Below, in pieces: positions 11,162 to 48,809 of a stretch of 64,000 bases of DNA. The notes beneath the pieces are model-generated. The model ran no database searches. It was not told the origin of the DNA and was given only the letters and a program-made list of their open reading frames with translations. The translations under genes and the position numbers were made by a program. Numbering within the stretch: the first letter of the stretch is position 1; each line of letters opens with the position of its first letter. Source of the stretch: Monocercomonoides exilis PA203 (Eukaryota > Protista > Preaxostyla); the NCBI GenBank assembly GCA_001643675.2, contig LSRY02000033.1, positions 992,001-1,056,000 of the forward strand, read 5' to 3'.

Positions 11162-13171
11162 GGGTTATAATTTTATCTCGACCTTTTTTTTTTATCTTGA
11201 CCTTCTTTTTTAATTAATCATTAACTTTTCCCACAATTTCATATTTGAAAAGATTTTTAAGTATATATATGAATTCAATTGATAAAAATAAATACATTTT
11301 GAAACAAACCCAATTTCGCATGGGGGGGAGATGGGGGGGTTTAGCCCCTTCATTGAACTTCTGTGTGGAATTGGAGGGTTACATGGGGCATAAAACCTTT
11401 AGTTTGTTAAAAATGTTATTTTTTGATTTTTTTTTCATTTCATTTCAATTAAAAAAATAAAAAATTATTATGATCTTAAAAATATTATAAAAAAAATGAA
11501 AATATCAACAGAAATAAAATTAAAAGAAGGGCAGAAAAAACTGCAAAGAGCAATGTCTTCGCGCAAGTATAGAAAATACAACAGTCGGCTGGAGCGAATG
11601 GCTCACATCGTTGTTGATGGAGTTTTTCGTATAACTGATGCTATCAATTCTAAGGAATTTAGTCGCACTGGAATAAAAAATGCAGTTAGAGCTCTCAGAA
11701 AAGGAAGGCTGGTTGGAAAAATTGGCAGACCTGCAGCAGTAGTGGGCGAAAAGGAACAAAGAGTTTTAGATATTATTCATATTGAAGCAAAGTCTGGAAC
11801 ATGTTTAACGTTAAAAAAAACAAGAGAATTGGTTTGCTTTATTTTTATTTATATGTTTTTATTATTTGCTTTTCAGATAGAAAATGTTATAAACGACAAT
11901 GATGATGAAGACGCACCATTTACAGAAGTTTCAATGTCTGCAACTTACGGCTTTGTCAAGCGTCATCCGGAGCTGAAGACTGGAACGCCGAAGAATCTGG
12001 ACATTAACAGACTTGCTGTTTCGTGCAGAAGTGCTTTTAAACCCTGGTATCAAACTCTCGACGAGCTGCATGAAAAGTTCCATAATAATCCAGCTTTGAT
12101 GATAAATGTCGATGAATCTTCAACGCGCGTTCCCACAGACTCAAAACAGCTTGTTGTTGTACATTCAGCAGATACAAAAGCAGGTTTTTCGAAGGAACCA
12201 CCAAGAATGATTAATACGACATTCGTGGCAGCTGTTGCAGCGGACGGATATGCCTTTCCTTCTATTATTCTATGGCCAAGTGCAAAGCTGCCAGATGAGC
12301 TGAAAAGCCTATTATCTCCTACGCTTGAGATATGGGCAAATGGAAGCGGCTGGATGGATAACGAGTGCTTTGAAAGGTATGCTCTCACCATTCTTCTTCC
12401 TTCCATCATCGAAAGAAGAAAGCGCATGTCACTTGAAAATGAACAAATTCTTCTCCTTCTTGACTCGCATGCATCTCGCGCAGATCCATCGATCTGGCGA
12501 GAATTCCAAAAACAACAAGTCGACGTTTTAACCTTCGTGCCACACAGCACACACCTCTGTCAACCACTGGACAGAGGAGTGTTTGCTGTTTTCAAATCTG
12601 AACTGACAAACAGATTTGAGGCTCCATCATCCTCTTCATCTTCCTCCAAACGAGCAGCAATTTCCGACGTTCTGCCTCAAGCTATCCACACTGCATTATC
12701 ACCTTCTGTAATTCAGAAAGCTTTCGTCTGCAGTGGTGTTCTGCACAATACTTCTGGGCCAGTTCTTTTGAAACTGCCCGAATCTTCAATTTACCCTCTT
12801 CCATCCCGAAGAAATAGATTCAACTTTTATGGAAAAGTGATAACCGACGAAATTCTTTTAGAGAAATGGGAAAATCATTTGAAAATGAATATTGAAAGGA
12901 AAAATGAAATGGATGAAAAGGAGAAAGATGAAGTGAAGACTGTTGTGGATGAAAAGAAAAAAATAAAAAGAAGATTTCTTCATGTGAAAAACGATGATTC
13001 TGAAGAAGAAAAGAAAGATAATGCATTAAATCGAGGTGAAGGAAAAAGAAAAGTTATCAGAAGAATTAATTCTGATTTTGTTTTCTTTTAATTATGTTAT
13101 TTTTTGAACTTTTCACACTTCATTTTTTTGGGTCAGAATAAAGAAAAAGGGTCAAGATAAAATAATAACCC
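11162..13171 (+). mobile_element. pogo/Fot1-like (DDE_1) DNA transposon, ~2.0 kb, ~40-bp TIRs, TA TSD
   Basis: TA|GGGTTATAATTTTATCTCGACC ... GGTCAAGATAAAATAATAACCC|TA encloses a transposase gene. Confidence 0.9.
11496..13091 (+). CDS. DD35D transposase (pogo/DDE_1 family) with a 45-nt in-frame intron at 11832-11876
   Basis: Catalytic motifs NVDESS, LLLLDSHASR and HSTHLCQPLDRGVF, with 35 residues between D2 and D3. Also GSGWMD and an N-terminal GRP motif. Intron reads GTTTGC...TTTTCAG. Confidence 0.9.
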   Translation: MKISTEIKLKEGQKKLQRAMSSRKYRKYNSRLERMAHIVVDGVFRITDAINSKEFSRTGIKNAVRALRKGRLVGKIGRPAAVVGEKEQRVLDIIHIEAKSGTCLTLKKTRELVCFIFIYMFLLFAFQIENVINDNDDEDAPFTEVSMSATYGFVKRHPELKTGTPKNLDINRLAVSCRSAFKPWYQTLDELHEKFHNNPALMINVDESSTRVPTDSKQLVVVHSADTKAGFSKEPPRMINTTFVAAVAADGYAFPSIILWPSAKLPDELKSLLSPTLEIWANGSGWMDNECFERYALTILLPSIIERRKRMSLENEQILLLLDSHASRADPSIWREFQKQQVDVLTFVPHSTHLCQPLDRGVFAVFKSELTNRFEAPSSSSSSSKRAAISDVLPQAIHTALSPSVIQKAFVCSGVLHNTSGPVLLKLPESSIYPLPSRRNRFNFYGKVITDEILLEKWENHLKMNIERKNEMDEKEKDEVKTVVDEKKKIKRRFLHVKNDDSEEEKKDNALNRGEGKRKVIRRINSDFVFF

Positions 13172-27034: not shown

Positions 27035-28211
27035 TATTATTTTAATTGTCTTAGAATGATAAAAGAAAAAAAAAGTGTGGTATTTTTATCCTAACTTTTT
27101 TTTATCCGGACAAAAATTTAAAATTAAAATATCTCAACAAATATTCAATATTAATTTACAGAAATTTGCATAGTTGTATATTATCATATATGACATCTAT
27201 TCATATGTCTAAATTTTTATGTAAAGTTCCTTTTGTTTAATTTTCAAATAAAATGAAAATTTCATTTTTCGATCAAATTTCTGTTCCCACTCACAAAATT
27301 TCTCTGTCATGAATATAAGATCTTGACAATGTTATTATTTTTGTTATTGAGTAGTTTCGTGAGTGGGAACAGAAATTTGATCGGTATATGAAAATTTTAC
27401 TTTATTTGAGAATTAAACAAAAGGAACTTTTCAAAAAAATTCAGACATATGCAAATTTTTAATAGCAGTGTTGTATATTTTTTGAAATAAATACTTTTTA
27501 TTTTTGAAAATCCGACTTTTGATGAATTTTTCTATTTTAATAAAACGATTCAATTCATCTTTTATACGCACAACATATTTTTTCCATGATATAAACAATT
27601 TAGGTTATTTTTTATTTTTTAGAAATTTGCTTGTCTAGATTGTATGGAAATCCATCATTTTTGAAAAATCATTGTCAAAGGGATAACTTAAAAAATATTT
27701 TTGACGAAACTTAACAACATCCAAGTGAATTTAACACATTCATCAATAAATATGATAGTTATGTAAATTTTCTTTATTGATGAAATTTAAAATGCTTCAG
27801 TAAAGATTCCATTGAAAAATTTTTTAATTTTTTTATTGAATATTTTTTTGAGTAAAATTTCTAAGAAATTTGAATACCATCGGTGCTTAACCCGCACCCT
27901 GGTGCCAAACTCGCCCCCTCTCAATTTTGCAAAACACAAATATTATTGTTATTATTTCTACAGATTTCTTTATGTTTGCTATAAAAAAGAAAAGGAATAT
28001 ATGATTGAAATGAAATGACTGCATAAAAATGCTCTGCAAAAGTTAATAAATAATTAAATATCCATCTTCAAATAACTTTGAACAAAGTATTCTCCATTGT
28101 TGCTAGAAGTGAGAACAACAAAAACAATATTCACTTGTTTTTCATTATTGATCTCAACTTTTCGCGGTTCCAAACTTTTCTATTATAAAAAGAAAGATAG
28201 ATAGAAAGAAA

Positions 28212-30562
28212 CTACGATGACAAAGAAGAATAATATTTTTTGAGAAATTCAATTTCTTTTTTACTAAAACCCGGTGAAACTGCTCTTTGAATTGGCTTTT
28301 CATTTTCCATTTTTCTTCTTTCCTCATCGCTTCCTCCACTCACATCATCGTTCACGATTTCATATATTTTCTTTTTCTTTTTCTGCTTTATTTCTCTTTT
28401 ATCTTCATTTGAAGAAGAGCTTGACAAAAGAATGTTGAATTCTTTTCGAGAATGCTTTGTTTTTAAAGTTGAAGAAGTCGAAGAAGCTTTTGAATTTTCA
28501 ATTTCTTTATATTTCGATCGAAGAAATGCAAGATGCTTTTCAGCATCTTCAAATTGTTTTTTCAATTCGAAGCTATCCAAATCTTCAATAATTGTTGTTG
28601 AATTTAATTCGTGATCATCAGATGGAAAAGAACAGGTCGGTATGTTCGATGAAGTTGATTTTGCTGAGTTTGCTTTTTCTGCAGTATAAATATCTGATGG
28701 TTTTGATGAAGCTGAAACACTTTGCCTTTTTGGTGGAAAATAGCTTCCAAAAAGTTCTTCACACCAATCTTGAGACGAAGAACGAAGATCTTCTTTCAAT
28801 GCAGATGTTTCTAAAGGTGCTCCTGCCACTCTTGAGAGCACAGGGGCTGCAGCAACAGGCAAAACTCCTGTCTTTATGAATGCTGCTTTTATTGTTGAAG
28901 GTGAACATGCAGCTGCCAAGGCTTCAGGAAGAACTTCTACGAGTTGTGTTCGATAAGAAGAGAGGGAGAATGGAGATGGAATGACAAATTTGTTGTTCAA
29001 TGTTGATTTCAGTCGAGAAAAGTTACAGGAATCGCACGGTTGAAGTAAGTGTGTCATGTTGGGTGGGAATCGCTTCAAAATGATGTTGTTTTTTTTCAGC
29101 GGCTTCAATTTCAAATTCATCATTATGTGTTGAATGATTGTCTATCAACAGAAGGGCACGATGTGAGCTGGTTGGTTTGACTTTCTCTGCGATAAATGGA
29201 ATCCAACAATTGATCATGTTATGTCAAAATTTTTTTGAAAAGTTCCATTTGGGTGATTCTTTTTGAAAAGTCACAAATGTTTAATTTTCAAAAATATGTC
29301 CAAATTTTTTTGAAAAGTTCCTTTTGTTAAATTTTCAAATAAAGAAAAAATTTCATATTTCGATCAAATTTCTGTTCTCGCTCACCAAATTTTGCTGCCA
29401 TGAAAATAAAATCTTTACAATGTTATTATATCCATTCAAGAAAAGTTTCGTGAGTGGGAACAGAAATTTGATCGAAATATGAAATTTTTTCTTTATTTGA
29501 AAATTTAATAAAAGGAACTTTTCAAAAAAATTTAGGCATATCGAAAATTTCATATTTTGCTCAAATTTCTGTTTCAGCTCACAAATCTCCTCAAGAATGT
29601 TTGAAATAGCATTATCAAGATTTTGATTCCATTTAAGTTAAGTTTGATATTTGAAAACAATATATTTATCAAAATATGAAATTTTTGATTTATTTGAAAA
29701 TTATACATTTGTGACTTTTCAAAAAGAATCACCCATATATCTGATATCAAATGATGAAAGAGAACGAAACTCTTTCGGGAGAGTTTTCTTAGGGAAAAGA
29801 AGAAAACGAGGCAACGATGATCCGACAGCGCAGACACAGAGGCAAATTGTGGCATTCGGTTCTTTTGGAGGCGATGGAACGCATGGAGGAGTTTGATCTT
29901 TGAAGCAAACAACCAATTTTGATGAAGATTCCCCGCAAGTGATTGAAGATTCGTCGAAATTGTATATGTCGGATGATGTGATGTTATAGTCTGAAATAAA
30001 AGCTGACAGTTCTGAAAATCATCTGCTAATATTTTCTGGTGACTGTGCTTTGATTTTTGCAACTTCTATTGGCCTTGCTATAGCGGCTTTCAAAATTTCG
30101 CTTCGTTGAATTAATTTGTATGCATAATTTTTTTTGATCATTTTCAATTCATTCTTAAATTTTGGATCATTTTCGATCAGATCGACACACTAAACCATTC
30201 AAAAAAGTTAAAAAAGCATGAAAATAAATATTACGAACCATGTTTTGCACATCACGAATTCGAACAACTGTTTGGTTAGACAAAAGAACCAAAACTTGGT
30301 TTTCAATTGTTTCCAACTGGTTGTCTGTGAATGTTTGTGAATGTCCATTCCTTCCGACCTCTCTTCCTGCTTTCTCCGCTCGTATCCCTCGTTTTCGAGC
30401 GTTCTTTGAAATAACTTTGGCTTTCATTGCAGTTGCATATTTCACTTTGAAATTTTGTCGAATCGCTAATAGCTTTTTTGATGGGGATTTGAACGCGCGA
30501 TATTCACTTGTTGCCAGAACTCTGTGCAATTGAGATGATGATAATTCTGTTTTTTCTGTCAT
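28212..30562 (-). pseudogene. DDE_1 transposase pseudogene (intron 30238-30190)
   Basis: Motifs YNFDESS, LLLIDNHSTH and PPNMTHLLQPCD. Lesions: TGA at a probable Trp position (ENISR*F, about 30020), an insertion at about 29219-29737, and a frameshift near 29100. Confidence 0.85.
29250..29735. mobile_element. Foldback/MITE insertion inside the transposase
   Basis: TIR TGGGTGATTCTTTTTGAAAAGTCACAAATGTwTAATTTTCA at both ends. The interior has CGATCAAATTTCTGTTC...GTGAGTGGGAACAGAAATTTGATCG, homologous to the foldbacks in the 851-bp arms. Confidence 0.75.
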
Positions 30563-32320
30563 CAAAATTTGGAATTATCAATTACTCCAGAATTATCAAA
30601 ATTAATGTTTCTGTCATAAGCAATCCTTTTCAGATGTATGGTTTGAAATTTTGTAAATATTTATCTTTATTGAAACATTGAAATTATCAACTTTCCAAAT
30701 TTTTGCTGAAAATCAAACATGTGAATGAAATAAAAAATAGCAACATTCAGCTTGAAGAAGACATGATGAAGAAAAATAATAATTGTTCTTTCATTATTTA
30801 ACACAATTTCGATTGTTTTTAAAATGTTTTTATTTCTTCTGTTCATAATAATGAAAAACAAGAGAATGCTTCATTGAGAGGGGGCGAGTTTGGCACCAGG
30901 GTGCGGGTTAAGCACCGATGGTATTCAAATTTCTTAGAAATTTTACTCAAAAAAATATTCAATAAAAAAATTAAAAAATTTTTCAATGGAATCTTTACTG
31001 AAGCATTTTAAATTTCATCAATAAAGAAAATTTACATAACTATCATATTTATTGATGAATGTGTTAAATTCACTTGGATGTTGTTAAGTTTCGTCAAAAA
31101 TATTTTTTAAGTTATCCCTTTGACAATGATTTTTCAAAAATGATGGATTTCCATACAATCTAGACAAGCAAATTTCTAAAAAATAAAAAATAACCTAAAT
31201 TGTTTATATCATGGAAAAAATATGTTGTGCGTATAAAAGATGAATTGAATCGTTTTATTAAAATAGAAAAATTCATCAAAAGTCGGATTTTCAAAAATAA
31301 AAAGTATTTATTTCAAAAAATATACAACACTGCTATTAAAAATTTGCATATGTCTGAATTTTTTTGAAAAGTTCCTTTTGTTTAATTCTCAAATAAAGTA
31401 AAATTTTCATATACCGATCAAATTTCTGTTCCCACTCACGAAACTACTCAATAACAAAAATAATAACATTGTCAAGATCTTATATTCATGACAGAGAAAT
31501 TTTGTGAGTGGGAACAGAAATTTGATCGAAAAATGAAATTTTCATTTTATTTGAAAATTAAACAAAAGGAACTTTACATAAAAATTTAGACATATGAATA
31601 GATGTCATATATGATAATATACAACTATGCAAATTTCTGTAAATTAATATTGAATATTTGTTGAGATATTTTAATTTTAAATTTTTGTCCGGATAAAAAA
31701 AAGTTAGGATAAAAATTCCACCCTATTTCTTCGATATTGAAAATCAATCCATTTTATTTCGTCAACACTACAAAGCTCAATACAAAATCTATTAATCTTT
31801 TTCCAGTTTTCACATGGGCAAATTTTTGGCAATTATGAAATAAACCGAGATTTATTCCAAACTTTTTCTGTAATATGTCACGATAAGTCAACCACAACAA
31901 TGCAAAAATTTATGGAAAACTTTCAACATGAGAAAAATATTTGAAAGTGAAGAATTGAACAAAATTTTCAAAGCAAAAAATTTCTTCCATTATTCATTCA
32001 TTGACCATAATAATTATTACTATTTCTCTATTTCATTTGAGTTGCTTTGAGAATAATTTCAATGATTCTAAAAATTTTCAAAACTTCGACAAATTGAGTA
32101 ATTTTATTGAATCATTTTTTATTCGAAATAAATCAACTATTTTTCTGTGAAATATATGGTTAATTCGAATTTTTGTTTTTACTTCAAAAGAGTGCAAAAA
32201 TGAACCATAAAAATGCACAGTTAAAAAGGAATCGAACGAATACAATATTAATGAAACTCTTTTGAGCACATTTTTTAATGACATGTTTATTGACGAGCTG
32301 TTTCACTTTTTATATCATTC

Positions 32321-46061: not shown

Positions 46062-46520
46062 CACTGTTTACAATGAATGTGATATGTTACAATGAATTTT
46101 ATTATTTTGATTAGCTTTTTTTTTTCTAATTTAAAGTTTATGAAAAATATTTTTTTTTTGATTTTGTACACCAAAAATAATTCGTAAAGAGAATTTTTGC
46201 AATAAAATTAATAGTTTTTCAAAGGAAATAATAGTTTTTTCTTTCAAAATAATAAATTTGCATCAAAACAAAAAAATATTTTTGTGTTAAAAATGAAAAA
46301 TTTTTATGTTTTCATAGGAATTAAAAAAAAAATTTTTTTTTGGAAATTCATATGTTTGATGAAGTGAAGCGGTATTTATTTATAGAGCATAAAATTTAAA
46401 CGATTCTCATAAAATGAAATTGTTATTTTTTCTTAGAAAATAATCAACTGTTTAGGATGTAGAAGATGCATAATAAAATGTCTCCTTTGTTTGAATTATT
46501 ATTAATTAACTTTTGAATGA

Positions 46521-46920
46521 TCACTTTTCTTATAGGCGGACACTTTCCAAATGGCCGGGCAGCAGACTTTTCTCAGCAGCTAATGATTGTTGATTTTAGA
46601 TCTTTTCCCACATCGCTTGTCAAATGAATATGAGTACATGCAGTTTGCCAAGAATGAAGAATTCTTATGAACTCATTTTTTAAAAATATATTTTGTTTTT
46701 CGGAAAATTTCGGAAAAACAAATTCCTTTGTGTTTCTCCGAAAAACAAAATATATTTTTAAAAAATGAGTTCATAAGAATTCTTCATTCTTGGCAAACTG
46801 CATGTACTCATATTCATTTGACAAGCGATGTGGGAAAAGATCTAAAATCAACAATCATTAGCTGCTGAGAAAAGTCTGCTGCCCGGCCATTTGGAAAGTG
46901 TCCGCCTATAAGAAAAGTGA
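46521..46920. repeat. Perfect 184-bp inverted repeat (46521-46704 / 46737-46920) with a 32-nt spacer
   Basis: TCACTTTTCTTATAGGCGG...TTTTTCGGA and TCCGAAAAA...CCGCCTATAAGAAAAGTGA are reverse complements. Confidence 0.95.
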
Positions 46921-47054
46921 CCATCAAGATGACTGCGACGAAAAAGTTTTTTTCAAAAACAAACTCGAAGACAATAACTTTAACAAAAACAAAAATTGAA
47001 ACAACATTGAAAATTATTTAACAAGCATAAATAATAATAATTTCAAACAAAATA

Positions 47055-47510: not shown

Positions 47511-47848
47511 TATTTCATTAATAGTCAAATCAATATAGTTCTGGTTTTTATTTCTTGTTGTTTCTTTAACAAACTGTAATGGAATCGACTATTTTCAATT
47601 GCTCACTAAACAAAATTTTATTAATCGATTGATTATCGGAAAGATCAATGAAAATGAATTTTTAAGTTTTCATTTGTCCAAATTCGCTTTTGTTTTCTTC
47701 GACAAATCATTAAAATTTTGGAATCGTTGCATTGTATAAACAAAAAATATGAAGCGGCAAGTCACAACTTTAAGTAACATTCAGAAACTCGTTTTTTTTC
47801 GGATTTTTTGTGATAGAATGATTTAATATCAAATAGTAAAACATGCTA

Positions 47849-48501
47849 GGGGTGAATTTTCCATATTTAGAATAATTTTTTTTTTATGAAAAAATTAAAT
47901 TTACGAAAATATTTTGGTTATGATCAAAAGTATTTTCGAAAATTTTTTGTTTGAAAATTGAACGATTTTTGGAAATTTCATTATTTGGTAAAACTTAATT
48001 TGTTAAAAAAAAACTTTCGATTCAAATGAAGTGAATTAAAGAAGTTTGAAGTTCATATTTGAATGTTTTGTAAACTTTTTAGTTATAAAATGAAGTGAAA
48101 ATGAACTTCTCGGGTTTCGTTCTGCTTTAGGGTTTTCCTTCGAATCGAAATATTAGGTTTAAAGGTTTGCATTTTATTTTTATTCATTTTTTTATTAATA
48201 GGGTTAAGGTTTCAATCAAAAAACACTTTTTCACACATCAAAAACGTGTGTTTCAATGATTGAGCAAGATGAAAGGTGAAAATAATAAATATAAAAATGA
48301 ATTGAGAACTTTTGTGATTTTCTTTTTATATAATAAAAAAGGAAAGCTTAGAATTATATAAAATTTATTAAAATAATTCTTTATTAAAGTTGGTTTCATT
48401 TTAAATAATCAGTAATAAGTTTGATCAAAACCATAATACTTTCGAAAATTTGATTATTTTCATTAAAAAAAAAATTATTCTAAATATGGAAAATTCACCC
48501 C
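47849..48501. mobile_element. MITE, 653 bp, GGGGTG termini, TA TSD, set in a mirrored 85-bp flank (47762-47846 / 48504-48588)
   Basis: TA|GGGGTGAATTTTCCATATTTAGAATAATT ... AATTATTCTAAATATGGAAAATTCACCCC|TA. The TIR degenerates inward after ~36 bp. Confidence 0.75.
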
Positions 48502-48809
48502 TAGCATGTTTTACTATTTGATATTAAATCATTCTATCACAAAAAATCCGAAAAAAAACGAGTTTCTGAATGTTACTTAAAGTTGTGATTAACCATGAAT
48601 AGTACTTTATATTGTGTATTTTCTAGAAAAATCTTCAAAAATATCAACAATGGTGTTTTGAAGAAACAATAATTCCAAGAGGATGATTTTTTTTCATTGA
48701 TAGATTACAGATAATAAACAATGATAATCATTTTCCCCAAAATTCATCACTTATAAAACTTTATTTTTTATGCAGTTATTGATCTTTTATTTCATTATCA
48801 ATTCGAACA

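Follow-up and report, generated by a model that had tools for sequence, protein, structure and literature searches.

The window analysed here, a 64-kb stretch of the genome of Monocercomonoides exilis PA203 (contig LSRY02000033.1, positions 992,001 to 1,056,000), contains a pogo-type DNA transposon flanked by two long inverted arms. These flanks recur throughout the genome and are, on that evidence, the arms of an outer transposon and not host DNA. The features are listed below by window position; C17 is a second locus with a pogo between arms of the outer family.

27073-27074, unstranded: left target-site position, decayed to AA (mismatch at 27073); the right counterpart is TA at 31724-31725.
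27075-31723, unstranded: outer element, a copy of a transposon family (~1.05 kb) that is palindromic over its whole length and apparently non-coding, here with three nested insertions; termini aligned with 17 copies.
27075-27876, + strand: left arm, ending in the TA of pogo and equal to the right arm from 27082 on.
27203-27450, unstranded: hairpin MITE of the left arm, ~248 bp, itself an inverted repeat.
27824-27874, + strand: central "loop" segment, mirrored at about 30924-30974; placed by central alignment, with approximate boundaries.
27877-30921, transposase on the - strand: pogo-type DNA transposon, non-autonomous, 3045 bp, with TA at both ends and a DDE_1 domain in a relative.
27877-27925, + strand: left pogo TIR, 49 bp.
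28248-30562, - strand: transposase remnants in four pieces, located by tblastn with the intact C17 ORFs.
30562-30224, - strand: remnant 1, matching the 113-aa upstream ORF of C17.
30186-29734, - strand: remnant 2, aa 1-151 of the C17 transposase.
29241-29734, unstranded: private insertion in pogo, about 480-490 bp of hairpin-MITE-related repeats, splitting the transposase gene.
29256-29092, - strand: remnant 3, aa 154-208 of the C17 transposase.
29096-28248, - strand: remnant 4, aa 207-492, with a frameshift near 29092-29096.
30873-30921, - strand: right pogo TIR, matching the left one at 49/49 positions; both have T at TIR position 35.
30922-31723, - strand: right arm, mirroring the left arm at every position but element positions 2 and 7.
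31348-31595, unstranded: hairpin MITE of the right arm, exact mirror of the left-arm MITE.

A repeat search of the window returned an inverted repeat of 859 nt (27067-27925 and 30873-31731) around a spacer of 2947 nt. When both arms are compared base by base, four mismatches appear, at 27069, 27073, 27076 and 27081; all lie at the outer GGGTGG-like tip, so the stretch from 27082 to 27925 (844 bp) is perfect. Inside the outer element the only mismatches are those at element positions 2 and 7, and the probability that both would fall within the first 7 of 851 positions under random placement is about 7e-5. In silico removal of pogo joins the arms as ...AAATTTGAA-TA-TTCAAATTT.... The geometry described in the earlier note is therefore reproduced: a pogo element centred in a palindrome of its own flanks, GC-rich 49-bp TIRs seen at both pogo ends and terminating at TA (27875-76 and 30922-23), symmetry that ends at GGGTGG-like tips with the sole mismatches there, and a palindromic junction once the element is removed. 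That note missed that the arms are a repeated transposon and that each of them holds a further nested MITE.

The inner element is of pogo type, as judged from the DDE_1 domain of a relative, its TA and its short TIRs. The 503-aa C17 relative matches Pfam DDE_1 (PF03184) with an E-value of 1.1e-17 and 64.6 bits (cut-off 22), and the 303-aa remnant of the window aligns to the same region at a sub-threshold 18 bits. The window gene is collinear with that of C17 in tblastn, and the C17 copy is probably intact. For the N-terminal CENP-B/psq-type helix-turn-helix DNA-binding domains, a Pfam scan of the 113-aa upstream ORF and of the first 110 residues of the 503-aa ORF returned no family at E ≤ 0.01. 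The transposase of the window is decayed, as had been noted: the gene is in three pieces through the insertion of about 480-490 bp and the frameshift. This insertion (element positions 1365-1858) is missing from all nine other full-length copies compared.

The 49-bp terminus occurs twice in the window, against 0 occurrences expected by chance. Pogo-family termini adjoin TA in 29 cases out of 30 (about 16 elements), and the TIRs measure 43-49 bp in ten copies. The left and right TIRs differ at 3-7 positions in each of nine other copies but at 0 of 49 positions in the window, where both share the rare T at position 35. Over its full length, the window pogo shares 88-92% identity with eight other copies, none of which has such arms. 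This lineage is apparently undescribed in M. exilis; transposable elements come up once in the assembly paper (PMC8767320), and pogo never.

The outer element also belongs to a family. A genome search shows arm positions 1-154 and 380-810 at more than 30 loci, arranged there in inverted pairs, head to head, and dozens of outer-family loci carry no pogo. The 17 family copies that were fetched are all palindromes of 1.0-1.1 kb with termini TA + GGGTGGTTTTTTTTATCCGGAC; their arms are 88-97% identical to each other. Across the family, the arms differ by 4-13%. Aligned with these copies, the outer tips of the window read TA|GGGTGGAAT on the right and, in mutated form, AA|GTGTGGTAT on the left, and the symmetry of the window ends at the family terminus. 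TA directly adjoins the GGGTGG or CCATCG tips in the aligned copies, with no duplication of 7-10 bp. The tips of subfamily b, CCATCGTTC..AAAACCCGG..AAAACCCGG (CCATCG followed by two AACCCG boxes), resemble the pogo TIR, CCATCGGTGC..AACCCGC..AAACCCGC; the GGGTGG tip of the window's own subfamily differs from this pogo-TIR-like tip. The element has TA and inverted termini, and at ~1.05 kb it is larger than a typical MITE. This is apparently an undescribed transposon family of M. exilis. Since the arms are a family with pogo-free copies and the symmetry ends at the family terminus, most of the symmetry predates pogo and is independent of it.

Three copies of the outer family allow comparison with the window. 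At C17, the pogo is only about 74-82% identical to the window pogo, and C17 without its pogo aligns to the pogo-free C91 copy without gaps over 1047 bp at 97.6% identity. This empty site implies that one TA was duplicated at insertion, and the C17 insertion is independent because its arms have a 97.6% identical empty sister. A single ancestral pogo-plus-arms composite for the window and C17 was considered and rejected on the basis of the pogo identities (74-82%, versus 88-92% for arm-free copies) and of the empty sister. At C80, a sister copy carries the loop to the left and to the right of the TA that pogo uses in the window, and this TA has received a hairpin MITE. The palindrome there spans at least 8 kb, its arms measuring at least 3.98 kb each around a 16-bp spacer, and extends at least 3.3 kb beyond the element terminus. 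Three independent hits (the window pogo, the C17 pogo and the C80 MITE) fall within 10 bp among about 33 loci.

Several patterns point to a copying event between the arms after pogo arrived. Ordinary outer-family copies have an asymmetric centre of ~65 bp, with the loop on one side of the TA only, whereas the window has it on both sides. Measured from the homologous TA, the two sides are 541-555 and 491-506 bp in ordinary copies, versus 556 and 556 bp in the window. The hairpin MITE is missing at this site in every other outer-family copy seen, arm positions 1-154 and 380-810 being contiguous there; its sequence (arm positions 136-394) is also found as separate repeats with up to 94% identity. 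Two independent MITE insertions at mirrored sites were rejected as an explanation: the two copies are identical to each other, yet their nearest relatives reach 94%.

The divergence between the window arms is 0.7%, all of it at the tip, and the nearest relative is 15.6% away. From the pogo terminal branch of 0.035, about 55 differences would be expected between the arms and 0 are observed over 27082-27876, in an ONT/Canu assembly polished with Nanopolish and ten Pilon rounds (PMC8767320), where single-base arm identity could be inflated. About 3.4 differences would be expected between the TIRs, and 0 are observed (P about 0.01-0.03, on 49 bp). The copied tract is confined to existing homology: its outer limit is 7 bp from the outer terminus, and its inner limit falls in the TIR or at its edge. 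Beyond the outer limit, homology amounts to 7 bp, two of them mismatched, which is little for classical two-ended recombination.

Two claims of the earlier note are thereby modified. It held that one flank had been overwritten by the other; the equal side lengths, the mirrored MITE and the TIRs identical at 49/49 positions agree with overwriting, but the arms were already inverted repeats. It also took the symmetry to be younger than the element, which the perfect identity supports for the last copying, though most of the symmetry is older.

Taken together, these data suggest that the locus, a nest of three TA-inserting DNA transposons, probably became perfectly symmetric later through the copying of one arm onto the other. 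The first two steps of this history can be read at the locus itself. It begins with an old ~1.05-kb palindromic, apparently non-coding, TA-flanked copy at 27075-31723. Pogo then inserted some 25 bp from the axis of this copy, into a TA where the central loop ends; one arm took up a hairpin MITE, and another MITE insertion split the pogo transposase gene. The third step, to which several independent patterns point, would be a single recent templated repair event that copied one side onto the other: an arm-to-arm gene conversion, most simply by synthesis-dependent strand annealing after a break. Anchoring would have come on the outer side from the arm homology already present and on the inner side from the inverted termini of pogo itself. 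Starting 7 bp inside the outer terminus, the tract would take in the arm with its MITE, the loop and the TA, and would end within the 49-bp TIR or beyond it. Such a conversion would have mirrored the MITE and the loop, erased the differences between the arms and between the TIRs, and made pogo look exactly central. The break could have arisen when the inverted repeat was cleaved as a hairpin or cruciform, or from an abortive transposase cut at one end of pogo; the same product would result if a strand folded back on itself were corrected. Arm-to-arm conversion in palindromes is established biology (PMC8600007, PMC8981503), and the locus, as far as its sequence can tell, illustrates clearly how known processes act in nature and does not reveal a new mechanism.

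The order of the last two events could also be the reverse. The palindrome would have been perfected first, with loop and MITE mirrored, and a diverged, trans-mobilised pogo would then have inserted very recently into the exact central TA, with no later copying. C80 gives some weight to this: its inner flank is mirrored in the same way and that TA has likewise taken an insertion, so the symmetric centre could predate pogo. Tc1/mariner-type elements prefer TA in palindromic, deformable targets (PMC5481204, PMC8934666), and the genome encodes at least one apparently intact transposase, that of C17. An arm-copying event is needed in any case, and only the order would differ. But the fold-back of at least 8 kb mirrored everything at C80, which makes this copy uninformative on the order, its symmetry being explained by its own large fold-back, and every informative family copy has an asymmetric centre. 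Nor is it explained why only the window TIRs are identical and share a rare base, since the 3-7 differences seen elsewhere would have travelled along with the element. This order is therefore considered unlikely, and copying after the arrival of pogo is preferred.

It is quite improbable that one arm, or the perfect identity, is an artefact of the Canu consensus or of Pilon polishing. In favour of it are the assembly route described above and the ambiguous mapping of short reads in near-identical inverted repeats. However, the locus is internal to a large contig and the 4.6-kb structure is easily spanned by ONT reads. Fold-back reads yield spacer-less palindromes at arbitrary points, not terminus-bounded arms around a 2.9-kb asymmetric centre; polishing cannot make a mirrored 248-bp MITE or a 50-bp loop, and the tip mismatches have been retained. 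An exact-protein look-up of an ORF spanning the left junction, aimed at an independent assembly, gave no match.

In the version derived from the earlier note, conversion or template switching primed by the pogo TIRs made a palindrome anew out of unrelated host flanks. One element of this idea stands: the symmetric tract has the TIRs at its inner edge, and they probably provided inner homology. The rest is very hard to reconcile with the data: instead of anonymous DNA, the arms are a pre-existing dispersed family that has TA-flanked termini of its own and whose palindromic copies are free of pogo in dozens of cases, and the symmetry stops at the family terminus, not at an arbitrary point. The flanks of at least 15 other pogo copies are unrelated and none is mirrored; among 30 termini of about 16 elements, no two have a common flank, apart from the window's own pair. 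These unrelated flanks also answer the caution, raised in that note, that arms common to all copies would make this simply a long-TIR family.

The further suggestion that short-TIR elements are thereby converted into mobile long-TIR or foldback composites found no support, as no second copy of the composite was found. At least two pogo-plus-arm composites exist (C24:553102, C38:50992, C18:853416 and C16:174672 were scored for one arm), and a genome search found no second arm-TIR junction of the window type at any other locus. Because of this and of the unrelated flanks, the window holds neither a long-TIR pogo family nor a mobile composite. That the 851-bp arms are working ends which transpose as a unit with pogo is the least credible reading, for although arms of this family enclose a pogo at C17 as well, the insertion there was independent, the C17 pogo is further from the window's than the arm-free copies are, and the outer target-site duplication of the window has decayed on the left (AA versus TA).

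The locus thus replaces the idea of a palindrome-manufacturing transposon by a documented series of ordinary events. It is an unusually clear record of one arm-to-arm copying event, with its limits, the heterologies of 248 bp and ~50 bp that were carried along and the TIRs used as inner homology. It provides a natural example for the growth of long TIRs and foldback structures, and for the question of why the M. exilis genome is rich in near-perfect palindromes. The two apparently undescribed families also matter for the annotation of this model amitochondriate genome. More speculatively, short-TIR transposons of this genome may regularly gain long, perfectly matched arms through conversion anchored on the TIRs of a nested element, and the loop of a hairpin-forming palindromic element may be a structure-specific landing site for TA-inserting transposons. 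Conversion recurring in this way would mark the beginning of a path to foldback or long-TIR elements.

Among known systems, the inner element resembles the pogo superfamily of IS630-Tc1-mariner transposons (PMC7386202, PMC7325037) in its DDE_1 domain, short GC-rich TIRs, TA duplication and burst of copies at 88-92% identity; for its N-terminal DNA-binding region, no Pfam match was obtained. The outer element is similar to the foldback-like transposons Drosophila FB, Galileo and Tetris (PMC2775673, PMC4079207): it consists mostly of two long inverted arms with a short middle, is apparently non-coding and has repeated subterminal boxes. Foldback-type structures form hairpins and attract breaks and rearrangements (PMC2775673, PMC4079207), and TIR elongation has been proposed as the origin of the foldback structure (Marzo et al. 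2008, as cited in PMC4079207). The outer element is neither Galileo (P superfamily) nor a Mutator-related foldback, because its duplication is TA and not 7-10 bp. It may be more like an oversized Stowaway or Tc1-mariner-type MITE.

Hairpin-seeded fold-back inverted duplication is described in yeast and mammalian cells. The window is similar in that one side was probably mirrored from the other by templated synthesis, and C80 fits this process, turning on its hairpin MITE. In contrast, the symmetry of the window halts at the element terminus and does not run into unique DNA, and it does not turn on a hairpin tip, since the 2.9-kb asymmetric pogo interior lies between the arms.

The palindromes of primate and mouse sex chromosomes are much larger (10 kb to more than 1 Mb, versus 0.8 kb in the window) and consist of gene-bearing duplications, not transposon arms. 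The window tract, unlike theirs, carried heterologies of 248 bp and ~50 bp and nested transposon termini, and it looks like the product of a single event, with no sign of selective maintenance. What the window shares with these palindromes (PMC8600007, PMC8981503, bioRxiv 10.1101/800185) is an organisation of inverted arms around a unique spacer, a resemblance between the arms far greater than their age predicts, and copying that is restricted to the homologous arms.

A repeat search of the window returns an inverted repeat of 859 nt, whose arms (27067-27925 and 30873-31731) are 2947 nt apart. The base-by-base comparison of the arms gives four mismatches, at 27069, 27073, 27076 and 27081, and the 844 bp from 27082 to 27925 mirror the opposite arm perfectly. 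In both arms, the innermost 49 bp are the GC-rich terminus that adjoins TA. Everything that the earlier note described is found where it placed it. The locus is composed as follows:

27075-31723: outer palindromic TA element, which holds a pogo element at a central TA
27073-27083: left tip of the outer element, AA (mutated) followed by GTGTGGTAT
31725-31715: right tip of the outer element, TA followed by GGGTGGAAT
27203-27450 and 31348-31595: hairpin MITE, one per arm, at mirrored positions
27877-30921: pogo element, 3045 bp, with extra MITE sequence inside

Elsewhere in the window, 132-nt inverted arms (98%) flank 563 bp at 47762-48588, and a hairpin with 191-nt arms (99%) and a 26-bp spacer lies at 46517-46924.

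The inner element is a short-TIR transposon of the pogo type. In the genome (82,301,135 bases, 101 contigs), its 49-bp terminus is found on numerous contigs, in pairs 2-5 kb apart. TA adjoins 29 of the 30 termini examined, and no flank is common to two of these 30, the window's own pair excepted; the remaining flank cross-matches are dispersed repeats located farther outward. The long arms are not shared by all pogo copies, a possibility that the earlier note had raised against its own reading: the TIRs of this family are short. Both a mobile composite and a pogo family with long TIRs are rejected, as the join between arm and TIR is found only at the two junctions in the window. Two unrelated pogo copies are flanked by a common long tandem array (L012:614-1198 and L028:777-957, two fetched stretches, which correspond to G000:C56 ~85.1-85.7 kb and C12 ~75.8-76.0 kb), which gives dozens of BLAST matches of 92-97% at 5-bp step offsets.

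The window pogo is 88-92% identical to eight other copies across its length; it belongs to a star-like burst, where its terminal branch measures 0.035. The pogo of contig C17 is more distant (74-82% identity to the window copy). This second-lineage element is TA-flanked (L056:994-3569 = G000:C17:391493-394068). It has a 113-aa ORF upstream of an open 503-aa reading frame, to which the Pfam DDE_1 domain matches (E 1.1e-17), and it may be an autonomous transposase source. The transposase gene of the window pogo is collinear with that of C17, yet broken: a private insertion of ~490 bp with hairpin-MITE-like repeats (29241-29734) parts residues 151 and 154, and a frameshift lies near 29092-29096. 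A further pogo-like gene or remnant is present in the window at 11919-12815 (+), which encodes a distant relative of the C17 transposase (29% identity over ~300 aa, E 2e-38).

The flanks of the window pogo are another transposon, a palindromic TA element. A genome search with the 810-bp arm finds positions 1-154 and 380-810 contiguous at more than 30 loci, where they form head-to-head inverted pairs, with an inter-arm gap of 0-120 bp at most of them. In the 17 fetched copies, the palindrome extends over 1.0-1.1 kb (arm identity 88-97%), and their ends align to TA followed by GGGTGGTTTTTTTTATCCGGAC(A)TTTTTTTTATCCGGAC. A separate and abundant hairpin MITE of ~250 bp, whose copies elsewhere are at most 94% identical, occupies arm positions 136-394; the arm search of the genome finds it in no other copy of the palindromic family at the same site. 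The asymmetric central loop of ~65 bp varies in its orientation to the contig from copy to copy (L052:1014-1066 versus L070, L062 and L054). A second subfamily (L064, L065, L068, L069; e.g., G000:C69:1121869 and C58:1932114) starts with TA followed by CCATCGTTC and has two AAAACCCGG boxes ~19 bp apart. This tip and box layout is the same as that of the pogo TIR (CCATCGGTGC..AACCCGC..AAACCCGC), which suggests that pogo transposases may mobilise these elements.

A second composite is found at C17:391018-394642, where the other-lineage pogo lies between arms of the palindromic family. When the pogo is removed and one TA retained, this locus aligns without gaps to an empty sister copy (C91:412060-413140, L059) over 1047 bp, with 97.6% identity. 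The match is a classic empty site and shows that pogo elements insert into already existing copies of the palindromic family. The C17 pogo is ~30-50 bp off axis, and its inner flanks are not mirror images.

For the window, five patterns show that simple nesting falls short and that one side was apparently later rewritten from the other. In ordinary family copies, the TA used in the window is at one edge of the asymmetric centre of ~65 bp; from the homologous TA, the loop side measures 541-555 bp and the other side 491-506 bp (totals 1032-1061). The two sides of the window copy, with the nested MITEs removed, measure 556 bp each; thus this copy holds an extra, mirrored loop. The hairpin MITE is identical and mirrored across both arms. 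Divergence between the arms is 0.7%, entirely at the tip, versus 4-13% within ordinary copies, while the nearest relative, the C80 copy, is 15.6% distant over the whole arm. Within the outer element, the only two mismatches are at positions 2 and 7 of 851, as is expected for an old, diverged copy that was overwritten as far as homology was usable; a young copy would not be expected to show this. Finally, the TIRs of the window pogo are identical (49/49), versus 3-7 differences in each of nine other full-length copies, and both have a T at position 35, which is otherwise seen solely in the C37 copy, in its left TIR. From the terminal branch, ~55 arm differences and ~3.4 TIR differences would be expected without homogenisation. 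Since TIR differences move along with the element, their identity here indicates that pogo had probably already arrived when the copying took place, and that its termini were included. The overwriting of one side, proposed in the earlier note, is thus retained, but its formation of a palindrome from anonymous flanks is rejected, since these flanks belong to the palindromic family.

The C80 copy (89% identity over arm positions 382-810) has a hairpin MITE at the TA that corresponds exactly to the one used by the window pogo (preceded by AAGAAATTTGAA). The MITE is at the centre of a near-perfect palindrome (L071:1991-9966 = G000:C80:1550490-1558465), whose arms are 97-100% identical, measure at least 3.98 kb and are separated by a 16-bp spacer. 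This palindrome, a fold-back inverted duplication turning on the hairpin, reaches at least 3.3 kb past the outer-element terminus and ends outside the fetched stretch. In contrast, the symmetry in the window stops at the palindromic-family terminus and encloses a 2.9-kb asymmetric interior, so the process was different, and homology-limited. The window pogo, the C17 pogo and the C80 MITE are three independent insertions within 10 bp in the family loop. They suggest, as a lead from a sample that is not unbiased, that the loop may be a preferred landing site, in agreement with Tc1/mariner-type integration, which is known to favour TA targets that are palindromic and deformable (PMC5481204, PMC8934666).

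On the best reading of these sequences, templated repair between the inverted repeats would have copied one arm onto the other in a single event. The arms of the outer element would have provided the outer homology and the inverted termini of pogo the inner homology, which would explain where the tract stops at either end and how the two heterologies were carried across. Long inverted arms form hairpins or cruciforms and attract breaks (PMC2775673). A strand folded on itself and then corrected is a possible alternative route. The ONT assembly of M. exilis PA203 comprises 101 contigs (~82.3 Mbp, N50 1,379,369 bp), made with Canu and Nanopolish and polished ten times with Pilon (PMC8767320). The gross structure is unlikely to be an assembly artefact; the base-level identity of the arms might have been inflated by Pilon.

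The pogo lineage and the foldback-shaped TA element are apparently undescribed in M. exilis. The process favored here, arm-to-arm conversion, is already known and well documented in large palindromes (PMC8600007, PMC8981503), but the setting is unusually legible. Beside the C80 palindrome, the window locus would be a homology-limited variant that involves a nested pogo.
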